From Glycera tridactyla (Eukaryota), in the NCBI GenBank assembly GCA_965644265.1, contig OZ286465.1, positions 62,124,001-62,188,000 of the forward strand: 64,000 nucleotides of DNA, given 5' to 3'. The position numbers and the translations under genes are program-made. Below the pieces are notes generated by a model that saw nothing but the letters and a program-made list of their open reading frames with translations, made no database searches and was not told the DNA's origin. Below, in pieces: positions 46,973 through 64,000 of this stretch. Each line of letters begins with the position of its first letter. The first letter of the stretch is position 1.

Positions 46973-47042
46973 CTTCAAGAATGTGCTGCATTTCATGAAT
47001 TGCAGTGATGAGTACATGGAATTGCTTCCGTCGAAGATCCAG
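46973..47042 (-). CDS. THOC7: THOC7 exon 7
   Basis: LDLRRKQFHVLITAIHEMQHILE; 70 nt; CAG/GT sites. Confidence 0.96.
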
Positions 47043-47599
47043 CTGAAAAGAGAAAAAAACATTATATGTCTGTGATTGCTCTGAGATGCTTGTATATCTT
47101 ATCAAAGAAATTTCTCAAAATGGGTGCACTCAAAATGGAATAAACCCAACATGCAACCCACTCGCTGATTTATGGGGCATTCTGGCCCTTTATTCCCTCA
47201 AAAAGATGCCCACACTCAACAAAGTGTGTGAAATGCCTCAATGCGCCCTTCTGGATGCAACTCTGTCTATATACAGTGAAATCTTCTATGAGTCACCATC
47301 CAATGAGCAATCACCTCTCTGAACCAGAGCTCTTGGCTGCTGAAAAACATTTTTTTTTATATATTTTACCTCTTTTGTGTGACCCCTCTCCACCACCCTC
47401 AAAAGATAGACAACCCTGCTATGAATGATGATGAGTCAACTATTGGGGCCTGAATATAGCCCAAATGTAGGATCATCCTACTCCCCTGTCCCCAATTCTC
47501 AAAAGGATCAGATTTAACAGATGAGGAAATGTGGGGTTTAGTTGGGGAAGGAGGTGAGTAAGACTTATTGATGAGAATGGAGAAAGACAAATTTCCTAC

Positions 47600-47666
47600 C
47601 TTCTGTTCAAGAGACTCTCTCGCTTCCCTCAGTGAATGTAGCTCATTGTCCAAAGCTTCTATTCGT
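47600..47666 (-). CDS. THOC7: THOC7 exon 6
   Basis: RIEALDNELHSLREARESLEQK; 67 nt; CAG/GTAGGA. Confidence 0.94.
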
Positions 47667-48278
47667 CTGAAATGTCAAACATAAAAACTCTCATTTCACA
47701 ATAAGTAATAGTAGAACCCATGATGGCATACCCTCTGATAACCAAACAACTGGTATGGATCATTATACATAAGTCCCCTTTCCATTTAACTTACTTTATA
47801 ACAAGATAAACATAGTGATGGACGACCATTTTTGTTGTCATCTATGTTGATGAATTCATTCCAGGTTGAGATAGTAACTTACAAAGCACATCCGTACCCC
47901 TGCCTGAGCGAGTGGCTACTGCACTGAGCTCGTGTCAAGCTCCTGTTACCTAGGTACATGTAATACAGTTAGGTCAAATGTGTAGGATTTCCCCATATAT
48001 GGCAGGGAGAGGCTGGCGGCCCCGGTCCCTGTTCAAGTCTGGCTGGTAATGTGTAACGCTTCTGCTACTCCCCTTCTGAACCGATTGGATTCATGGTGTA
48101 GCACTTTCAGGTTTCATTGCTCTGCATCAGATCTTGACATAGAGCAAGATCACTATTAGGATTATGAAGCTACTTCACAATCTCTTAGCTTTAGTTTATC
48201 CATGGTGATGCCAACCAGGTGAGTAATTATTACTTCAAAATCGTGATGGTCTGCATCTCTGGAATTGGTCTCACTTAC

Positions 48279-48336
48279 TTTAGCGTGTCCTGTCTGTCTG
48301 GATGCTGTTGTATCACCTTCGCCAATGCATCATACT
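48279..48336 (-). CDS. THOC7: THOC7 exon 5
   Basis: (E)YDALAKVIQQHPDRQDTL(K); 58 nt; TAG/GTAAGT. Confidence 0.96.
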
Positions 48337-51300
48337 CTACAAGGATGGTACAAATGGAAACAGATTTTAAGAAAGTATATCTCTTTGATCAGTCCACATC
48401 ACAGTCTCAAGCTTGATCTCCTCCCCATGACTTCATTACTTGTTTCACCTGTACAGCAGAGATGCATCTAGGAATTCCAAATTAGGGTCCAATCGGCCCT
48501 TTTGATTGACAAATTGGTGCCATTGCAGGAGACCAACATAGTGAAAGTAGTAAGATTATCAAACAGGGGAGGGGGGGGGGGGGAATGGGGATCTGGCACA
48601 CTATCATTTTGAAAAGGGACTGAAGATGACAAATGTGTGTCAATTGGCCCACTCCCCTTCCAAGATGCAACACAGCTGTTCACAGTTTTTTGGGGAGGAG
48701 TACTTAGCAATGCATGATAAATGATGGGCATAATATGGGCCCCCGTTTGAGTGGGAGGGGATGGGCTTCTAAAATGATTGGGTTTTGTGACAAAACAAGC
48801 ATGCATATGCTACAAAGTTAAATTTTTGACTGATAAACGTCTCTCATACAAGGTTCATTTCACAAAGCGAGGCTCACCACATTAAACCTGCTTAACAGCC
48901 CACTTGTACTCACTGAAAATTCCAAGAGATGAAAGCTATAGTTTTTCATGCTACAAATGTAACGCCACGTTTTTGAACATGTGACGTTTGTTAGAATAAC
49001 ATGAACAATATAGGGATTTCTGGTAGCGGAATTCGCGGAATTCCTCTTTTGAGGCCCGCGGCACTAGTTTAACGCTACTAGATTGATAATTATTTCTTCC
49101 TACTCCTGAAGCATGAGATAGTTTCACTTCTATTAGTTGAGAAACAGTGGCAATCCTGTTAGTTTTCTAATATTTGTTGTTTCACCTATCTGGTTGTTGG
49201 TGTGGCAACTAGAGCTCGAGTTACACGCAGTGGAATCGCCGTTCGCGGTGGGTGCCCAGCTTGCAGTGTTTCTAGGGTGAAACAGTAGAAATGCGATATC
49301 TTCATGAATAATGGACGTAGGGAGACCATATTTTTACACGATACGTATCTGTATTAGGGCTAAAGATATCCCGAAGATGGGGATTGTATCTTTTGAGGCA
49401 AATTTGTTAGTCCGTGGGATAGGTTGTTTATCGGACGGTTTTTTGCCAACATAGTTGATCACACAGTATAGTGAACGACTCCCTGAGCAGGAGGAGCTCG
49501 GAGTCGCGCAGGAGGAAAGTGATCTGCAATGTACATGCAATGTACATGTTTTCTCAGAAAATCTTCTGTAATTGATCTAGAAAAGTCTCGAGCGAATACT
49601 TTCGAGGTAGCTGACTCGAGGAGCTTGACATCGCTTCTCCCGCTCTTTTTTCCCGCTCTTTGCTGGCTCTTCAGGACGGATACATAAAAGTATTCCAGAC
49701 AGGAGTTCTGGCACTTGGAAATTCTGTCCTGAAGAGTACGCACCGGAGCTGAGGGAGTCGGGAGCAGAGAACATCTTGCTTCTCCAGTATCGCTGCACTG
49801 GAATAGAATCAATGGACTCCACTACATCATCCTGAGCTCTACTACATCCAGTAAGTGTTCATGAGATTTAGAAACGTTTTAGGATCCTTTTAGGAGGCTT
49901 TATTAGGCGTCATTTTCCCCATTTGCCCAAATGGCCATTTTTAGTATCATGCCATTTCATGTCATCGGATCTTCCGTGTTTTGTATTGAATGTACCATCT
50001 TTCGAGCATACGTGGTCAAAATCTAGAATTTGCATGTTTTTGGATGATTTTGGATCATTTTGGATGATAGGATTTTGTTCCATAAATGCCGTCCTGATCC
50101 AAACAACTAGCTGATAATTCTCGCGGATATTGGTAGTTCTATCTGTTTCTGTAAATTCCCTGTGCTGTTCCGGTGATTTTGGAACAATTGGAACTGCGTG
50201 GAACTATGCCGTGTTCCTCCTGCGTTGTTCCCGGTGCAGTACGCCTGTTTGGGTGGAACAGGGCTATGCAGGAATTTGTGATATAGTATTTAACGCTTGG
50301 ACTCACTGAATCCTCCGGGTGAGAGAAGCTGTGTGTATGAACTGCTAACACGTCTCAATATAGCTCCTACCGATCAGATTCTGATCATTTGTGTAATATT
50401 TCGGATTTCTGTGTGAATTAGATGATTGAATCATTCAAAATTCAATTATATTCATGGGATTTCCCTATAGGAATAAAATAGTGAAAGGAATATTTCTGTA
50501 AGATCATTTTCAGTTGAAATATCAGCAGAGACGACTGTGTCTTTTCTCTCTGAATCTGTGTGTTTTTAGACCCGGCTACTCTACCAGTCCATGTGGGCTG
50601 AGTTGAAATGAACATGCCTATCTCGGTATGACAATGGCAGCTCGCTGTCATGTGTACTAACCAGGTCACCGCTGAGGTGAACTCTGCTGCTGGTTTCGTA
50701 AATAGCACACACAGCTGATCTGTTTTTCTTTAGCTTCCTTGCTCATATGAATAGAGATCCAGTCAATCTTTTCTTTTCCGAGTGAAATTCTTTATTGAAA
50801 AACGTATTTTCATTGAAACGGCTTGTTTTGAGAAGGTAATAATCTAACGTCGTTCATATGGTGTGAAAATCTGAAATTCTTTGACGGTTAACCGATCGAT
50901 TAATCGATTAATCGACCGATCAAATATGCTTCAATTTCAGTATTCTGAATTTATTTCGGCTTGCAAAAAGCTTGTTTATAAACGATCAAGTGCTAGTTTG
51001 ATGGTATTTCAATTTCCATGACCACAACTGTCGTATTTGTCAATTGAAGATCCGGTGGAATGTTTTTGGTGCTCGTACTTGTAATAGACACGAAGGGGAG
51101 ACGACAAACCGAGGCTTATTTTGTTTACACGTAGTGCCTGCTTGTGATTCATGTGCTCGGCTTGAATTTAGACTTTTTCGGAGAAGGTCCACTCTGATAA
51201 GCTTGATTTCTGTCCTAAGCGCCGTATATCCTAAGCACGGACCCGTCCTAAGCTTGCTTAGTCTTGTGTGATGTCCCTGAGTCCCGTGACCTACTTTTTT

Positions 51301-54881: not shown

Positions 54882-54968
54882 CTTGTCTATTTCGACGAAT
54901 GCGCTTTGCTTGCTTCAATTCATCCTTGCACTCATTTATTTTCTCATATGCTGAACTAAGACCATCCT
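54882..54968 (-). CDS. THOC7: THOC7 exon 4
   Basis: (K)DGLSSAYEKINECKDELKQAKRIRRNRQ; 87 nt; TTTCAG/GTGAGT. Confidence 0.97.
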
Positions 54969-55319
54969 CTGAAATAAAGTGAACATGCTTCATGCTACAG
55001 GCTTATCTTGCAAGCATATTTCCTGAGTGATGGACGTCATGGATGAACTTAACGGAGCGGGACATCTCAGTACTTCAGCTAGAAATAGGATGGTTCCTGA
55101 GTAGCAATACATATCTCCCAAACACGACCCACTCTCAACCGGGATAAGGGACGGCACATTCTCCCGCCAATTTACCGGGATATCCTAAACCAATCACATG
55201 ACAAGATACTAACAAAGCAGTCATGGGACAACGCTACTACTTCACATTTGCCAACAGCAGAGGAAAAGAGCTGGATGGCATCCTTGAAATCTTGTGATTA
55301 ACTTTCAACACTACACTAT

Positions 55320-55481: not shown

Positions 55482-56231
55482 ACTGTGAGTACCGTGAAAA
55501 TTCTACATTAAGTAAATTGACCTACTTTGGAACAATTTGGCGAAATGATTCATGATGTTTTGACCATTCTCCTAGTAATCTTGGTCATGTGATGGATTGG
55601 TGAGTTTGGATCAGTGCCTAGGTGCAGGAGGTTGTAGACTGTGGCAGGTGGTATCCCTGGTCCCTGTTCATTGTTGGGTTGTGCTGGTGGATGTGCCTGG
55701 CTTCTTTCACTCTAAGTAAGGTCCAGTTTGCTTCAATGCAGATGATTTTTTACTTTGTGTAGTGGTCAGTGTTTTGGAAGTGTTCCCCTACTACGGCTGT
55801 AGGGATGTCCAGGTTGTTGTGTCCTTTGAACCTGGTGAACTCCTAATGTTACTCTCATTTCACCAATGTATTTTTGGGTCATATCATGGTTGCATTGGAT
55901 TTTGTAAATCACCCCACATTTGCCGACAGGCTACAACCTACTCCTGCAAATTGGGAGGATGAATAAACTCACTAATCGTTCCAAAGTAGGTTAGTTTACG
56001 TTCATCATAGATCCTCTAGGAACCAAGGAAGACATACATGTATTTGCAATTTTACAATTATAGTTCCAGGCTGGCCAGTTCAAGCTCCAACATTGGTTAA
56101 CTCCTCGAGGTGTTAACCCCCCCCCCCCTCCCAAAAGATGCCTTAACACTTTCTAGTAATTTTGCCATCTTGAAATATACAATTTAGAGACAGCAACAAG
56201 GAGCCTAAGTTGAATAGCCAAGCATACTTAC

Positions 56232-56359
56232 TGATTTCTTGGTTGAGTTTCTCATAGTTTTCCTGCTCCCCGAGATTCATGTTATACACTTCCAGAGACT
56301 TGTCTGTGGATTGTTCAATCTGTGCAAGCATTCCTACCAACCGCTGATAGGTGCTGTTA
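56232..56359 (-). CDS. THOC7: THOC7 exon 3
   Basis: (S)NSTYQRLVGMLAQIEQSTDKSLEVYNMNLGEQENYEKLNQEI; 128 nt; TTTACAG/GTAAGT. Confidence 0.96.
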
Positions 56360-57278
56360 CTGTAAAGCAAGAATATTTACAACATTTATGGATCAATTGG
56401 TTGGGGTTTTCTTCAACTACTCTCCCATCGAGAGATCAGACAAACAGAATCACTCTCCCAGAACCGTACAATTTAAAAAAGGAATACAAGCTGAAACCAG
56501 GCTGTCTTGGAGCAAGATGTCTGTTTGAATGAAGGGCATGAACTTCAACTCATCATGTGAGTGATATTTTATTGCAGTCAGAAAAGCACAGGTATATGCA
56601 AAGCCATCTCATCAGGAAAAGGGTGTGCTGCTGGTGGAGACAGAATCGTGGCATTCTGTCTCCAGTGAATATAGTACATCTTCATCAATTGAAAAAATTA
56701 CTCTCTTATTGGGAGAGTGAGATTGGTCTTTTCACACTCCCAAAATCAAAGTCACTCTCCCAGGATTCAGGCTTAACCCAAAGACTTATGTATCTATTTC
56801 TCAATAGATGAACTAAAGCTCAGTTAGTAAAATCAACATCTGCCCACCTGCCTGTGGCTTGTGAAATTGGAAAAAAAACTAAAGTAAATGACAAAGCACC
56901 ACTGAAAATTTGTCAACCTTACTGCTCATACACAAGAGTGAGCTTTCAAATGTGACAAACATACGATTTGTCTAGTGACAGGTTGATATGATATCTGAAT
57001 ACTGTAAATAGCTGTGATTCCGACATGAGTGTGTTTTTACAACTGATTACAATATCAGGGATGTTATAGTGGTTGGCCTCTCTGAACCACCTCCCAATAA
57101 TGACTTGCATGCTTGGCTGAAGACAGTTATAATTGGCAAGTTCAACAGTGCATGTGGGTGCAAAACATGAAATTCGAATGTACATCATGTTTAATTTGAT
57201 AGAATTGAACAGCATGATTCCAGTTGAATGGGATGAAGATGAAATGAGCAGGCACCAGTCCAGGGAAAGATACACTAC

Positions 57279-57399
57279 CTATCCTCTGGAGATTCACTTG
57301 AGTTGGACCACTTAATGAACATCTTGAGGGTGTTATTTATCCGCCGGTCATCCACACCACCATCCCCCTCCAACAACAATCGACGCTTAATAATATCAT
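57279..57399 (-). CDS. THOC7: THOC7 exon 2
   Basis: (D)DIIKRRLLLEGDGGVDDRRINNTLKMFIKWSNSSESPED closely matches the recalled THOC7 N-terminus (DDEVIRKRLLIDGDGAGDDRRIN..VKSFIKW); 121 nt. Confidence 0.97.
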
Positions 57400-57959
57400 C
57401 TGAAAGAAAAAATAAAGTATCTTGCAGGAATAGTGGCCAATAAGCACAGGAATCTATCATGTGGATAGTCCTTCAAGATTTCTTATTGTATACATTAACC
57501 CATGAACGCACCTGACTATCATTTGCCGTCAGAATACAAATGAGAGTGCACAAACTTTGTCAGTTTTTTAAACCAGTTTCTCTCAGTTTAATCCCACATC
57601 TGACACCCTTGTATAACTCAGTAGTGCCTGTTAATCGATGTCAAAATCAGTCAAAATCACCAACAGTTTGAATTATTCAGATACTGATTCTGGTTCAAAC
57701 AGGTGTGTTCGTTGTAAGTTCAAATATATGAGAGCAATTTTTTCTGATGGCAATTGGAATTCTGATGACAAAAAACGGACAGATGTTCACATGGCTTTAT
57801 GCAATATCGTGAATGTTATGTACTGTATGGTAGTTCACAAAACCTGGAGACAACCACATTCAACATTTCTTGGGCAGCGTATCCTATCGGATGAGTGGTC
57901 CAGGACCAACAAATCTCCTGAAGTGGGCAAACTCATTTTGAAGGATTCACAAACTTTCA

Positions 57960-58190
57960 CAGGGCATCAAGATGCCCTGTTAATACAGTGTATTAACAGT
58001 TCATCTTGATGCCCTGTAAAATAATTTCATAAAACAGGGTGAGAGGTTCTTACCGTTAATTAATGTTTTGACCACCATTGGCAGCATTCGTCATAACAAA
58101 TTCCCGATGGCTGCCAGTGGTGGTTGAAATATCAATAAACTGTAAGAACCTCTTACCCTGGTTGTGAAATATTAACAGTTCATCTTGAAG
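57960..58190. repeat. Two adjacent foldback (palindromic) elements in THOC7 intron 1
   Basis: 57960-58016: 27-bp arms (25/27) around a 3-nt loop; about 58018-58185: long imperfect arms including CAGGGTRAGAGGTTCTTAC. Confidence 0.85.
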
Positions 58191-59332
58191 ATGATTCCAA
58201 CCCGATGATACAGTAAATAAATGGAAATATCTGCTACAGATAGACTAAGCCTTCCACAGTCAGATTTTCTTCTGTTATGAGGCATAGGGCTAAAAATTCA
58301 TAAGCCATGAAAATGATTTCTCGATAAGTCAGAGGATCAAATATCCGATCCTGCACTAGGCTGTAGTTCAAGCATATGAGGTGTACAATGGAAATGTTGT
58401 ACTTCATTAGACACATATAGAATGGTCAAAATGAGTATCGTGTAACACAATTTTGTGCTAACAACCTGGAATTACATACCACATTCACACAGATTTCCAT
58501 AGTAGTGATAGACAGGAAGTGAAAGTCAGCAGAATGAAAGTGCCACCTTGTGCCAATAGAGTGAAATAGACTGGTGGAAATTTCTGGAATTATATGTTGT
58601 TATCCTATATTTTCACAATATCTTGCATCTGCCTGTATTTTTATCTTGTTTGATAATTGGAGGGAATGGATATAAGAACTCCAGGAAATTGCCAAACACT
58701 TTCATATGCTGCGGTGAAAGCAAATTTTGCATGAAGGAGACTGCCGCTATCGCTACCACAAGTCTGATGTTTACACCCCTACTCTTGCAAAACCTCAAGC
58801 GGGAACAGGCACTCCGGACGAGACAGGCTGACACTCCGATTACACTTATTGGCAAGATACCATGTGGGATATGCTGGATGACAGCGCTGAATATCCAGAT
58901 AACCTGCTAATGAATCTGAATCCGAGGGGATTCAGAGGTTTAAGCTTCCAAAAGTGACAAAGTTTATAAAAATTAGTAGATATTTATATTTCAGATCTTA
59001 ACTTCAGGCTCAACTGAATCAATATGTGAATCTGAATAAAGATATATTCGACGGCCAGTCATAATGCTTCCTGGTCCTCAGTTACTGACGAGCGCACGCG
59101 CGCGCGTGCATCATGCATGGCCAACCGGCCAACTCATCGTGCCAACTGTCACATCAATCTTAGTGCCTATGTAAACTCGTGATACAACCATTCAAATGAG
59201 TCATACTCCATACGATCTAGAGCAAAAGTACGGGCAAATTAACAGCGACAAATGGATTAGCAACTAAACGTGATCATTGGGCACGTTTACGGTCGGCAAA
59301 GCGTATAGTAAACACGCGTGGATTCGGCGTAC

Positions 59333-59348
59333 CATCTGAAACGGCCAT
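59333..59348 (-). CDS. THOC7: THOC7 exon 1 coding part
   Basis: CAAA-ATG GCC GTT TCA GAT G|GTACGC = MAVSD, phase-compatible with exon 2. The joined CDS is 597 nt, 198 aa, with no internal stop. Confidence 0.88.
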
Positions 59349-59638
59349 TTTGCACCGGCTACGTCCCATATAGCAACGAAGAAAAAAAAGGTTTTGGTCA
59401 TGAAACGTGAGAGATACATCGTTCTGAACATGTTTGAAACAATATTACAATAATGCCACTTCCCCATTTATTATGTGTGCAGCAGCGTTGCACATAAGTT
59501 GAAAAAAGAAACCGGCTAATATGGCAAATTCTTGATGCAGTAAGGGGCCTTCATTCAGACTGAGGCCAATCGGAAAATGTCGGTTCTGACGTCACGTTCG
59601 GCAAAGTTCGGTCAGAGTAAAGCAACAAGAAGTGCAAA
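59349..59638. promoter_or_regulatory. Bidirectional promoter between THOC7 and the ATXN7-like gene
   Basis: 290 nt between divergent ATGs, both in CAAAATGGC context; CCAAT 59566-59570; CRE TGACGTCA 59587-59594; CpG-enriched. Confidence 0.75.
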
Positions 59639-59726
59639 ATGGCGACCTTGGACGACAGTCCATCATTATATTTAGGCCAACCATGGCCAGTATGGGTGGA
59701 GAAGGTGGAAGGAAAGCTTAAACAAG
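59639..59726 (+). CDS. ATXN7: Ataxin-7 family gene, coding exon 1
   Basis: MATLDDSPSLYLGQPWPVWVEKVEG resembles the recalled ATXN7/ATXN7L1 segment [24 protein letters not shown]; in-frame TAA at 59618-59620 upstream; donor AAG|GTAAGA. Confidence 0.8.
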
Positions 59727-59889
59727 GTAAGATGAGATGTGCATGTATCATTAGATAATTTTTTGAGAAGCCCCCATGTGCTTATTTAGTCGATTACATC
59801 GAGCGAAATCATGCGACATGACTTCGCTTGCTGCATCAAACGACGTTGATTGGAGAAATTGTCACATTTTCTTTTTGTGTTTCTTGCAG

Positions 59890-59958
59890 GTTCAGGCAAT
59901 CGTGAAACCAGCCATCCACCGAAGGTTGATAGCGATGCCATGAAGCTTCGAAAAGCAG
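59890..59958 (+). CDS. ATXN7: Ataxin-7 family gene, coding exon 2
   Basis: TTTCTTGCAG acceptor, 69 nt phase 1-1, (G)SGNRETSHPPKVDSDAMKLRKA (compare EVMRLNKE|D); donor CAG|GTAGGA. The zinc-finger exon was not found in this window. Confidence 0.72.
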
Positions 59959-61648
59959 GTAGGACGAAAATTTCAATACCGTCCCTGCCTATTTATCAAC
60001 GCAAATAACACACCAGAATTTTGTGTTTGCACTGATTTGGGTTTGAATATCCCGTTTTGAAAATCGTTCACATGTCAACTGAAATACACACTGTTTATCA
60101 CAATATCACATATTTTTACATGTGCAAAACGTAGTTAGTGCACAGAAGGTGAATGATAGTGATGTTGTCAGGCTGATAAAAGGTGTGTTAGCCACACTTT
60201 TGCTGGGTAGTTGTTGGAATTGTGTTCAGAAATGTGCACACCCATCTCCAGTAACATGTTGTGTAGCTTCAGGATGTAACCCTCTCTTGTTGCTACACAT
60301 GGTTTCCCACATGACTCATTGTACATAGATCCTCAGTATATATGTATACCCATGCATTGTCATAAATACTCGCAATTAAGTGATGGGAGATCTTTGTTTA
60401 TGTCTTTTATGCATGTATTATGTATTGAATATCTTGCTGTATAGTGTCAGTTCACCACATGATAATCAGACTGATAATGATGTATGCAGTATAGATATTA
60501 TTGGACACCCCAATGCAACTACATCGATCAATACAGAGCACAGTATGGTGCTAATTGTATTGAATATTATGTTATTAGCATCATTAGATTACATCTCATC
60601 ATTTGGAGTCAACACTTAGCATGTATGTAACTGATATTTTGCTTACTTGTTTACAGGTTTTGTCACCCCTCTAAGACTGTTCAGAAAGGCCATGGCTTGG
60701 AGTCAAGTCACATTAATGTGAATGTTATTGGTTGTGCGCCTTGACCACCATCTCCATTGATTGGATTTTCCATGTTAGACTTTGGTTTCTTGCTTGGTAT
60801 TTTGCTCTTGAGCTGTTAACCCTGTTCCCATCATAATGTGATCATCCATCTTGAAAAAAAGGGATTCTAGTCTATGGATAACATCTATGTGATTAGAATT
60901 GGATTCAAATCAACACCATTGAATGCCAATTGACCACCAGACATTGTATTGAGAGAATTGTACAGATGATCAAAACATCTCTCCAGTTGGTGGTCCTGCT
61001 AAGATGTCATATTTGTGAGAATCTCAACAGTGAAACTCAGTGCATGCCGACTGAGATATCAAAGGCCGGCCATGTGTATAGTAGTCCATTGCCACATACC
61101 CTGAAAAGAACCAGTGCTGTCCTTTGCAAGGACTAGGGGATTGTCACTGACAGTGGTGCCTGTTTTCTTTAGCATTGACAGTCTGATATAGATTAATGAG
61201 GTTGAAAGGGCATTAAATCCAAACAAGCAACAATTATGCACAGTGGTGCCAATTTTCGGGAAAGTTGCTGAAACCTGGAAATTTGTCACAAAATTTTGAA
61301 TCCGAATTTTTTGAGAGTTGGACTGAAAGTCTGAAATCTGAAGCTTTTGGGAGTTGTTTCATGAAATTTAATTTGATCAGGTTTCTGGAAATTCTGTTGC
61401 AATTCAGTGGGGTCACCATGAACAGCAATGGTTTCATACATGAGATTTGTGTATGTGTGATTTCATGAAGATAATTGACAGTCACATGATATGCAGTATA
61501 GGTATTATGGTCGCTAGTCATGACTGAAGTGTGCATGTTCCAGGCTTGCACCACTTTTATCTCATTGGCAGTAATAAAATGGCTAGGCAAAAGTTGAAAA
61601 TATGACAAAGATTGGATTTCTTCATGGAGATTCTATGTATGGGATTAT

Positions 61649-61844
61649 AGTAAGACGACATTGCTGTGTGAGATCCGCGTTATTCCCAACGAGGTTGGCT
61701 GCGCGGCCGGAGGCACACGAGGCCGCAGGCCTCATGATTGTTATGATTGCCGTGTGAGATCCGCGTTATTCCCAACGAGGTTGGCCGCGCAGCCAACCTC
61801 TTTGGGAATAACAAGCGGATCTCACACGGCAATGTCGTCTTACT
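61649..61844. mobile_element. Palindromic MITE-like element with a duplicated arm
   Basis: About 60-bp inverted arms AGTAAGACGACATTGC.GTGTGAGATCCGC...; an extra direct copy of the left arm at about 61750-61790. Confidence 0.8.
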
Positions 61845-62065
61845 TTTCTCACATGACTATTTCTGATGTATTACAAGAAATGAACTTTATTCAACAAACG
61901 TTCGGTTTGATTACCTGACGCGCGCCCGCCGGCTGGCGCACTACTCTGTGGCTGACATTAGGCAGGGTAACTTCACCATAGCAACGATTGTATCAGCATG
62001 AGTGACGTGACGGCACAATGCACGGGACACACCGGCGGCCAGGATTGTGAGATTCATGTAATCGT

Positions 62066-62135
62066 CGTGTGTGTGTGTGTGTGTGTGTGTGCAGTGTGTG
62101 TGTGCAGTGTGTGTGTGTTTTTGAATGTGTGTGTG
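62066..62135. repeat. (GT)n microsatellite
   Basis: Direct inspection. Confidence 0.9.
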
Positions 62136-64000
62136 AAGCAGAATGCACCGGTGTCAGGGGACAAACGTTCGGTTTGTTTACCTGACGCGCGCCGTGCGTG
62201 CCGTGTGCAACGCCAGTGTTAGATTCAGGTAATCTCACACCCCCCTATCTCACACTCAAAATGACGCAGTCATGTGAGAATACTTTGGTTACCCAATGTA
62301 TGGAATGGGCCTGGAAAACTAAGCTCCACACACTCCTTTGATAGCGATATGCTCCTGGGAATGTGAATCTGGTTGTTGGACATGTGTAACTCTCCTCTTA
62401 CCCGCTGAAATGACGGGTGCAAAAAAAAGTTAGTGTTAAGCCCTGCATTCCTAAATGCAGTAGCTCCCAGGGAATCTCATGATTGTTATGATGGTTTTAT
62501 CATTCAAAGGTGGTGAGAACGGAGTCAAAGCTAATTCAGAATATAGAGATCAGGGGGTCTTTCAGAAGATTGGATCAGGGTGTAGGGGGGTAAAGAAAGA
62601 ATCAGAATGGGGGGGGGGGGGTAGGTGATCAATTTCGAGCCCTTGCATTTGGAATTCAGGCCTTATTCAAGAGAGAGGTGAAGAGTAGGCACTAACAGCC
62701 AAAAAAATGGGGAATGGAGTTAATCAAAATAGGCATAGGAGGTTGTTGTCCCAGTTTTAGGATGTCTAATAGAATTCAGGACATACCATATTAAAAATTT
62801 GGGAAGTAACAGATATGCCTGTATTCTGAATTTGTGATGGGAGCCCCAAGAACTTGAATCAAGAGGTAGGGATGCCAAATTTCGTCTGAATTTGGGCGGT
62901 AGCTGGTCAGAAATTCTTGCACATTAGGCCATGACGAATAGGAAGACAGCTTTGCAACATCCGCTGGGATCCCTCTAAGATGAAGGGCAGTTTGCAAATG
63001 ATTTAAGCAAAGTGAAATTCGGAAAGCACTCAGTAGACAATCAGAGAGCATTTCATTAGATCAATTCAGTGAAATGAAAAATCAATGGTATTCTTATGCC
63101 TCCAGGCAGGTCATCAGTGATTTTTGTTGTGAACCAATCAGATCCATGGATATCTCATTGCAAAGTTTTGTGCATTGGTACCCATTGTCTTGCAATAGTG
63201 TCATTTGATAGGGCTCGATGTTAAGGTCGTGCTGCTGTCTGGAGTAGGCAAAATTTGTGTACCATCGAGTGGATTACCCTGGCCTGCATGGCAAGTTTAA
63301 TGCAGGAATGTTTGTATACTTTGAATAGGTGTGGCTAAAACTTTTGCTGTTCAGACAAGTACAGTGTGTCTCGGTGACCATCCGTTTGATTGGCAGGTGA
63401 CCAGAGGATGCATTCTGCCTCGCCTACCTTCTCCGCTCAATCCACAGGCATTGATGCCAACCTCTATAATTCTGCAGCTGTGAATACTCATTTCAGGCTA
63501 GAATTTTTTTTTTTGGGGGGGGGGGGAGAAATGCCCCTCTCTCCGAAAAAGGGGGCATTTTCAGCGAAATGGCATTTTTGGAGACAGGAAGTCAGTGTCA
63601 TAATGTTTCAAATAGATTGATGAAATGAACTTGGTGGTGTGGCCAGGTGAAAACAACTACCCAGGAAACAGAAAAGTCAATGTAATTCAAATGCATTAGA
63701 CACTGCTGCTACTCTTGAAATTGGTGCCATTACTATTTTATTGCAAATACTGGTACTGGTACTCTTTTAAATTGGTCAGGGCGCGAAGAGATCGCCTCCC
63801 GAACGTCCCAGGCGTGCCAAAATCGCCATCGGGCGGGTGAATCTCAGTTACACGTCTTTTTCGGGCGACAGATATCTATCTCTGATTGACTGAATTGAGA
63901 ATTGGGGCGAAATTGACAAATCAGCGACCTGCCTTCATGGGGCTCACGGAGGTCGCCAGATGTCAACAATGTGCGCAGGAGACGATTTTCGAGCTTCTGC

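Follow-up and report, generated by a model that had tools for sequence, protein, structure and literature searches.

A THOC7 gene and an ATXN7-family gene in divergent orientation

In the window (the whole 64-kb stretch of Glycera tridactyla DNA that was analysed) we found the 5' ends of two genes lying head to head, a THOC7 gene on the minus strand and an ATXN7-family gene on the plus strand. The two start codons are divergent, with the A of the THOC7 ATG at 59348 and that of the ATXN7-family ATG at 59639, and exactly 290 bp lie between them, which bears out the arrangement and the spacing given by an earlier sequence-only reading of this DNA. THOC7 is a subunit of the THO/TREX complex and acts in mRNA export; ATXN7 is the anchor of the deubiquitinase module of SAGA and belongs to chromatin regulation. 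The features of the locus are collected in Table 1.

Table 1. Exons and promoter features of the THOC7/ATXN7 locus (positions are those of the window)
Feature	Position	Strand	Basis or remark
THOC7 exon 7, ends approximate	46974..47045	-	tblastn, residues about 159-182, up to 83% identity
THOC7 exon 6, ends approximate	47597..47671	-	tblastn, residues about 137-160
THOC7 exon 5, ends approximate	48278..48337	-	tblastn, residues about 118-136, up to 90% identity
THOC7 exon 4, ends approximate	54883..54969	-	tblastn, residues about 89-117, up to 65% identity
THOC7 exon 3	56232..56359	-	tblastn, residues about 47-88; joint 57279/56359, GT..AG
THOC7 exon 2	57279..57399	-	human THOC7 (7apk_G) residues 7-44; PF05615; X1 contig joints
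THOC7 coding exon 1, MAVSD + 1 nt	59333..59348	-	ATG 59348; GT donor 59332-31; contig joint 59333/57399
GTGCAAAATGGC spanning THOC7 ATG	59344..59355	-	inverted copy; YY1-like or Kozak-like
Candidate shared promoter, inter-ATG region	59349..59638	.	within CpG-rich island (about 58900-60200)
CCAAT box	59566..59570	+	present in Glycera gap; no CCAAT at that position in the other four invertebrates
CGGAAA, ETS-like GGAA core	59571..59576	+	putative role; word also in Lingula, Lineus and fish
Full palindromic CRE TGACGTCA	59587..59594	.	invariant in 5/5 invertebrates
Leader word CAACAAGA	59623..59630	+	at -16/-17 from ATG in 5/5 invertebrates
GTGCAAAATGGCGAC spanning ATXN7 ATG	59632..59646	+	opposite strand is YY1-like CGCCATTTT
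ATXN7-family coding exon 1 (MATLDDSPSLYLGQPWPVWVEKVEGKLKQ, phase 1)	59639..59726	+	opening peptide; tblastx with Owenia; contig joint
ATXN7-family coding exon 2	59890..59958	+	AG acceptor, GT donor; joint 59726/59890, GT..AG

Exon 2 of the minus-strand gene alone matched Pfam family PF05615 (29.4 bits, cut-off 28.7) and human THOC7 in the THO-UAP56 structure (E 1.1e-9). Homologues were collected by a phmmer search of this exon against a representative library of 1.84 billion proteins and were then compared with the window by tblastn. Six exons (exons 2-7) were found to be collinear with named THOC7 proteins, which are ~200 aa long, over residues about 6-182. Identity was 54-62% with spiralian and vertebrate orthologues and fell below this with those of insects, with about equal similarity to the nemertean, mollusc and annelid proteins. 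The last coding piece, an exon for the C-terminal tail, was not located by tblastn, and the layout as found reaches to about 46974. A credible THOC7 exon occurred at one locus only in the 2.04-Gb genome. By its sequence the minus-strand gene is THOC7.

One of the homologues, P0040, starts with exactly the N-terminus predicted for the spliced Glycera protein, MAVSDDDIIKR. This homologue (L016:10001-10606) is an intronless THOC7 of 201 aa on a 246-kb ENA metagenome contig, adjoins a Pao-type retrotransposon, and is probably a retrocopy carried by a genome of spiralian-like character. Another intronless THOC7, with the start context AAAATGGCGAC, is encoded on a Logan contig from a compact genome (L017:1-1045), where its start lies 56 bp from a divergent, unrelated ORF of 114 aa. 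P0040 and P0072 are intronless copies with other neighbours and were therefore unusable as synteny informants.

Exons of both genes were present in one public run, X1, whose sequences are kept as contigs and whose RNA nature is a guess. Its contigs skip both THOC7 stretches given as joints in Table 1, with GT..AG on the minus strand, and record 6 skips the ATXN7 stretch, likewise with GT..AG, as the sole ATXN7 joint in a contig. Since exactly these stretches are skipped, the first introns of THOC7 and ATXN7 are real. Positions 59333 and 59958 are true exon ends, the latter followed by a GT donor. Within THOC7 intron 1, the stretch 58244-58645 showed very high X1 contig depth with many loose ends, as in an expressed or high-copy repeat.

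The THOC7 contig (X1 record 1), the only one for this gene, extends about 496 nt further 5' than exon 1, with sequence that has no counterpart in 56100-60100. Allelic divergence, a chimera or a non-coding exon further upstream might account for it. If it were an exon, the two genes might overlap, with THOC7 starting at a non-coding exon beyond exons 1-2 of ATXN7 and splicing into 59353-59358, and a polypyrimidine tract with an AG does lie beside THOC7 exon 1 on the minus strand (59359-59391). However, the aligned piece of the contig stops at 59353 and not at this AG, the contig may be chimeric, and no sign of such an overlap was seen in the other species, whose annotations give the coding range only. 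We regard overlapping genes as decidedly unlikely.

For the plus-strand gene, exon 1 (29 aa) and exon 2 (22 aa), searched singly, gave no match in PDB or Pfam because they are too short. Their identity rests on tblastx and on the opening peptide of exon 1, with which the annotated SCA7-domain genes of Lingula, Saccostrea, Lineus and Owenia also start. All exons were searched individually, and those beyond exons 1-2 were assigned to the gene by reading phase and by collinearity with Owenia. Exon 3 (L011:3860-3965) lies 3.9 kb past the end of the window and continues the reading phase of exon 2. Family membership was judged by the three-domain scheme for ATXN7 (PMC10676324). Domain I was found in the zinc-finger exon (L011:3862-3963), which matched residues 133-165 of human ataxin-7 (E 7.1e-7), and domain II in two exons of the same strand with the SCA7 domain (Pfam PF08313, 37.4 and 31.6 bits, cut-off 23), 25.8 and 28.1 kb downstream of the ATXN7 ATG, the second of which also matched the NMR structure 2kkr (E 3e-4). 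For domain III, a candidate block at L013:6296-6424 matched human ataxin-7 residues 523-556 weakly (E 0.078) and was 71% identical to the collinear Owenia block. A large exon at L013:7120-8352 gave no PDB match. In a tblastx comparison with the whole annotated SCA7 gene of Owenia, the Glycera gene gave about fifteen collinear blocks, which begin at exon 1, reach the C-terminus and extend over about 37.6 kb.

We conclude from these matches that the plus-strand gene is the single gene of the ATXN7/ATXN7L1/L2 type, and that its exons probably make up one complete gene. The sequence-only reading had named both genes and had taken the plus-strand exons to lead into an ATXN7-family gene. Both identifications hold, that of THOC7 by Pfam, PDB and collinear exons and that of ATXN7 by the zinc finger, the SCA7 domain and the collinearity with Owenia, and the zinc-finger exon and both SCA7 exons were located downstream.

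Intron 2 of the ATXN7-family gene contains a second CpG-rich patch (61400-62200 of the window, observed/expected 0.8-1.1). Its repeated units, read in either orientation, translate to ...RSALFPTRLAA..., and a (TG/CA)n-rich tract comes after them. A tRNA was looked for in this patch and none was found; the patch is probably a repeat family.

The region between the start codons and its conserved bases

A high CpG observed/expected ratio is the usual sign of an unmethylated promoter in an otherwise methylated genome. The ratio was 1.3 at 59001-59600, compared with 0.1-0.4 on either side, and the region between the start codons thus belongs to a CpG island. Neither TATAAA nor TATATA was found within the 290 bp. 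The CCAAT box, the CRE and the mirrored words at the two starts, which had been described from the sequence, are all present, the last as CAAAATGGC at 59635-59643 with its reverse complement at 59344-52. The inverted word common to both start codons extends over 12 nt (GTGCAAAATGGC, 59632-43 and 59344-55), and each copy occurs only once in the 64-kb window. A scan for bacterial promoters and terminators gave chance-level counts only and is irrelevant to the Glycera locus.

We aligned the gaps of five invertebrates, namely Glycera, Owenia, Lingula, Saccostrea and Lineus. The 75 bp preceding the ATXN7 ATG align in all five, and the THOC7-side half does not. Within the 75 bp, the CRE TGACGTCA ends 43-50 bp before the ATXN7 ATG in every species and is followed in the alignment by a TTCGG / (T)CCG(G) pair. 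Further on, AAAGCAACAAGA-(N)-TGCAAAATGGCGA leads into the ATXN7 start codon, usually with C as the next base. The word AAAATGGCGA is invariant in all five, and AAAATGGCGAC stands at the ATXN7 start in four of them, the last base being A in Owenia. Only two 8-mers, TGACGTCA and CAACAAGA, are common to all five gaps, both at fixed positions, whereas 200 shuffles yielded no shared 8-mer. The ETS-like word CGGAAA lies about 10 bp 5' of the CRE and is aligned in Lingula, Lineus and the fish discussed below.

The earlier proposal of an ancient conserved promoter stands in part, the CRE and the leader being conserved in the five invertebrates, the CCAAT box and the CAAAATGGC copy on the THOC7 side not. 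CCAAT was rejected as a conserved element: 290 bp should contain one by chance, and the gaps of Owenia, Lingula, Saccostrea and Lineus have none where the Glycera box lies. We also rejected a longer palindrome, CCGAA..TTCGG, with the CRE inside it; it is clear in Owenia only, with 3-7 of 14 flank positions agreeing elsewhere. The word AAAATGGC is close to a common invertebrate start-codon context. At the THOC7 start it recurs only in Lingula, Ptychodera and L017 and is not general, and the THOC7-side copy may represent a favoured start context plus an Ala codon and no more.

The conserved 75 bp might function chiefly at the RNA level, within the 5' leader of ATXN7, by controlling translation or as an upstream ORF, with TGACGTCA transcribed. 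The conservation extends right to the ATXN7 ATG, and in the fish the block of CGGAAA, CRE and ATGGCGAC is exonic and follows a splice acceptor. Moreover, an out-of-frame upstream ATG in the worm (59577, plus strand) opens a 32-codon ORF that runs across the main start codon. The upstream ATGs are, however, not conserved; TGACGTCA is a perfect DNA palindrome and a typical bZIP site, and the element lies within a CpG island, as a promoter would. We assign a low probability to a mainly RNA-level role. The upstream ORF (59577-59675) would be relevant only if transcription began upstream of the CRE. The heptamer of its ATG, ATGTCGG, is the same as that opening the fish ATXN7 ORF.

Synteny across animals and the vertebrate N-terminal extension

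Synteny was read from the genomic places of named THOC7 orthologues, with distances taken from ATG to ATG. The upstream neighbour of THOC7 was a divergent SCA7-domain gene in the annelid Owenia (236 bp), the brachiopod Lingula (258 bp), the oyster Saccostrea (309 bp), the nemertean Lineus (291 bp) and the teleost Tautogolabrus (7.5 kb). ATXN7 was not the neighbour in the amphioxus Branchiostoma (a CCDC162-like gene), the starfish Asterias (a prefoldin gene) or the mayfly Cloeon (an unrelated gene on the same strand), and in the acorn worm Ptychodera nothing, and thus no ATXN7, lay within 10 kb upstream of THOC7. A tblastn search for ATXN7 exons within 10 kb upstream of THOC7 gave only noise in Ptychodera, Branchiostoma and Cloeon, and the CRE was absent from this stretch in these three species and in Asterias. 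Only stray AAAATGGCG words occurred upstream of THOC7, far from its start, in Branchiostoma and Cloeon. The prefoldin gene of Asterias and the CCDC162-like gene of amphioxus are themselves head to head with THOC7, at about 680 bp and about 3 kb (L026:5100-9324, L020:1-6913).

It is beyond reasonable doubt that the pair is inherited and was already present in the last ancestor shared by annelids, molluscs, brachiopods and nemerteans, if not earlier. Since THOC7 and ATXN7 are divergent in vertebrates too, the pair most probably goes back to the ancestor of all bilaterians. The human THOC7 and ATXN7 genes lie at 3p14. As the sequence-only reading had stated, they are divergent neighbours; a shared bidirectional promoter has been reported for them, and CRISPRi aimed at ATXN7 also silences THOC7 (PMC10053147). 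The same reading had called for a survey of the linkage across bilaterians, and its outcome is mixed: the linkage is kept in Owenia, Lingula, Saccostrea, Lineus and the teleost, but missing in amphioxus, the acorn worm, the starfish and the mayfly. Such absence from intermediate lineages was what the reading itself had named as speaking against its proposal. Since THOC7 has other neighbours in the sampled invertebrate deuterostomes and the mayfly, continuity of the linkage from spiralians to vertebrates can only be inferred. Inheritance from the bilaterian ancestor needs losses in Ambulacraria, amphioxus and insects and is still the economical reading. With the linkage missing beside THOC7 in amphioxus, Ptychodera, Asterias and Cloeon, several losses have to be assumed, and co-regulation of the two genes would therefore not be essential.

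Alternatively, the vertebrate adjacency of THOC7 and ATXN7 might have arisen independently of the spiralian one. Adjacency is missing in all three invertebrate deuterostomes sampled, and the two start codons of the fish are 7.5 kb apart, the CRE going with the ATXN7 exon and not with THOC7. On the other hand, a divergent adjacency of the same two genes by chance is, by our estimate, very improbable among roughly 20,000 genes, and losses through rearrangement are common, which makes convergence a very improbable explanation. Among the papers that we searched, none named the pair outside vertebrates.

The fish locus differs in a way that may bear on how the N-terminus of ataxin-7 arose. In Tautogolabrus the first coding exon of ATXN7 (L019:2290-2500, minus strand) follows a splice acceptor, lies in a CpG-rich spot of its own 7.5 kb from that of THOC7, and begins with MSERAEDDVR. 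Here TGACGTCA is found at +20 to +27 of the ATXN7 frame, where it supplies the codons of DDVR, and CGGAAA stands just before the ATG. The ancestral start ATGGCGAC (MATV) is found at codon 35, with a CAG-rich run between it and the CRE. The zinc finger begins at residue 133 in human ataxin-7 compared with residue 54 in the worm; the fish and human proteins therefore bear an N-terminal extension that is missing from the invertebrate proteins examined. According to a review, an alternative promoter of human ATXN7 lies beside the CAG repeat (PMC7760973).

We propose tentatively, and with more doubt than confidence, that the extension of vertebrates, which bears the disease-causing polyQ tract, might be the ancestral bilaterian promoter and leader, translated from an upstream ATG. 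The CRE would have become the DDVR codons and the old start an internal MAT, and the CAA/CAG run may stem from CAACAAGA. The human promoter beside the repeat would then be the ancestral one, now parted from THOC7. This proposal is drawn from one fish locus and the alignment. If true, it would explain the source of both the polyQ N-terminus of ataxin-7 and the repeat-adjacent promoter, and would bear on the control of ATXN7 expression around the SCA7 repeat.

Possible mechanism and comparison with known gene pairs

Overall, we think it likely that the locus is best explained as a genuine, intact and inherited THOC7/ATXN7 head-to-head pair driven from a compact, CpG-rich region of 290 bp. Bidirectional promoters are those of divergent genes with less than 1 kb between their 5' ends, and the spacing of the two start codons makes the region a candidate for one. 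The region would form one nucleosome-free, unmethylated CpG island holding two back-to-back core promoters, with transcription starts so placed that both leaders are very short. The ATXN7-proximal 75 bp would act as a fixed module consisting of the ETS-like CGGAAA, the CRE and the leader CAACAAGA-(N)-TGCAAAATGGCGAC, and the THOC7-proximal half would be free to evolve. Motif matches suggest that CREB/ATF-type bZIP dimers may bind the CRE 43-50 bp before the ATG, and that the complement of the leader may offer a YY1-type CGCCATTTT site overlapping the ATXN7 start codon. Because it is palindromic, the CRE could serve both directions, and in this way the two genes might be regulated together. The linkage has been lost repeatedly, and such coupling would therefore not be obligatory.

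The persistence of the pair could reflect joint control of SAGA and TREX components, or it could equally reflect how few breaks in a short gap between essential genes would be harmless. In its strict form the latter alternative holds that the two core promoters are independent and merely abut, that a gap of 250-300 bp between essential genes is a tiny target for harmless breakpoints, and that there is no joint SAGA/TREX control. Several observations would fit such passive retention: THOC7 stands head to head with unrelated genes in Asterias (prefoldin) and amphioxus (CCDC162-like), the linkage has been lost at least three times, and sequence is conserved on the ATXN7-side half only. It is less easily reconciled with a palindromic CRE inside the shared gap, with a gap that stays at 236-309 bp in five invertebrates of widely differing genome size, and with a human promoter that acts as one unit under CRISPRi (PMC10053147). 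We consider purely passive retention possible, but not the probable explanation.

If the gap is an inherited shared promoter, as we think likely, its 236-309 bp offer a compact model of how a bidirectional promoter can persist for more than half a billion years. The kept bases can be named, namely the CRE, whose distance is fixed, and a leader that runs into a YY1-like start, and are directly mutable. A pairing known from the side-effects of human CRISPRi would moreover be ancestral and not a vertebrate accident.

The worm pair is a conserved, putatively bidirectional gene pair of the ordinary kind, whose human counterpart has already been described. It resembles other head-to-head gene pairs and cases of metazoan microsynteny in its short, CpG-rich gap free of TATA hexamers, in joining two housekeeping genes, and in an order and orientation kept across phyla. 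The motifs of the worm gap are of classes (CRE/ATF, ETS, CCAAT and YY1) in which human bidirectional promoters are enriched. What sets the pair apart from the usual conserved pairs is that promoter and leader words are kept at fixed distances over four to five phyla, which is much rarer than the keeping of gene order. A further likeness is to promoters with YY1 sites over the start and short leaders, as a predicted CGCCATTTT site, read on the strand opposite AAAATGGCG, lies over the ATXN7 start codon in each of the five invertebrates; unlike in those promoters, however, the word also resembles the invertebrate start context plus an Ala codon, and this may suffice to explain the copy on the THOC7 side. 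Compared with vertebrates, the start codons of the worm are 290 bp apart and exon 1 of ATXN7 is coding, whereas the first coding exon of the fish lies 7.5 kb away and is N-terminally extended. In human the same two genes are divergent as in the worm, but exon 1 of the worm is without the polyQ tract of human ataxin-7.
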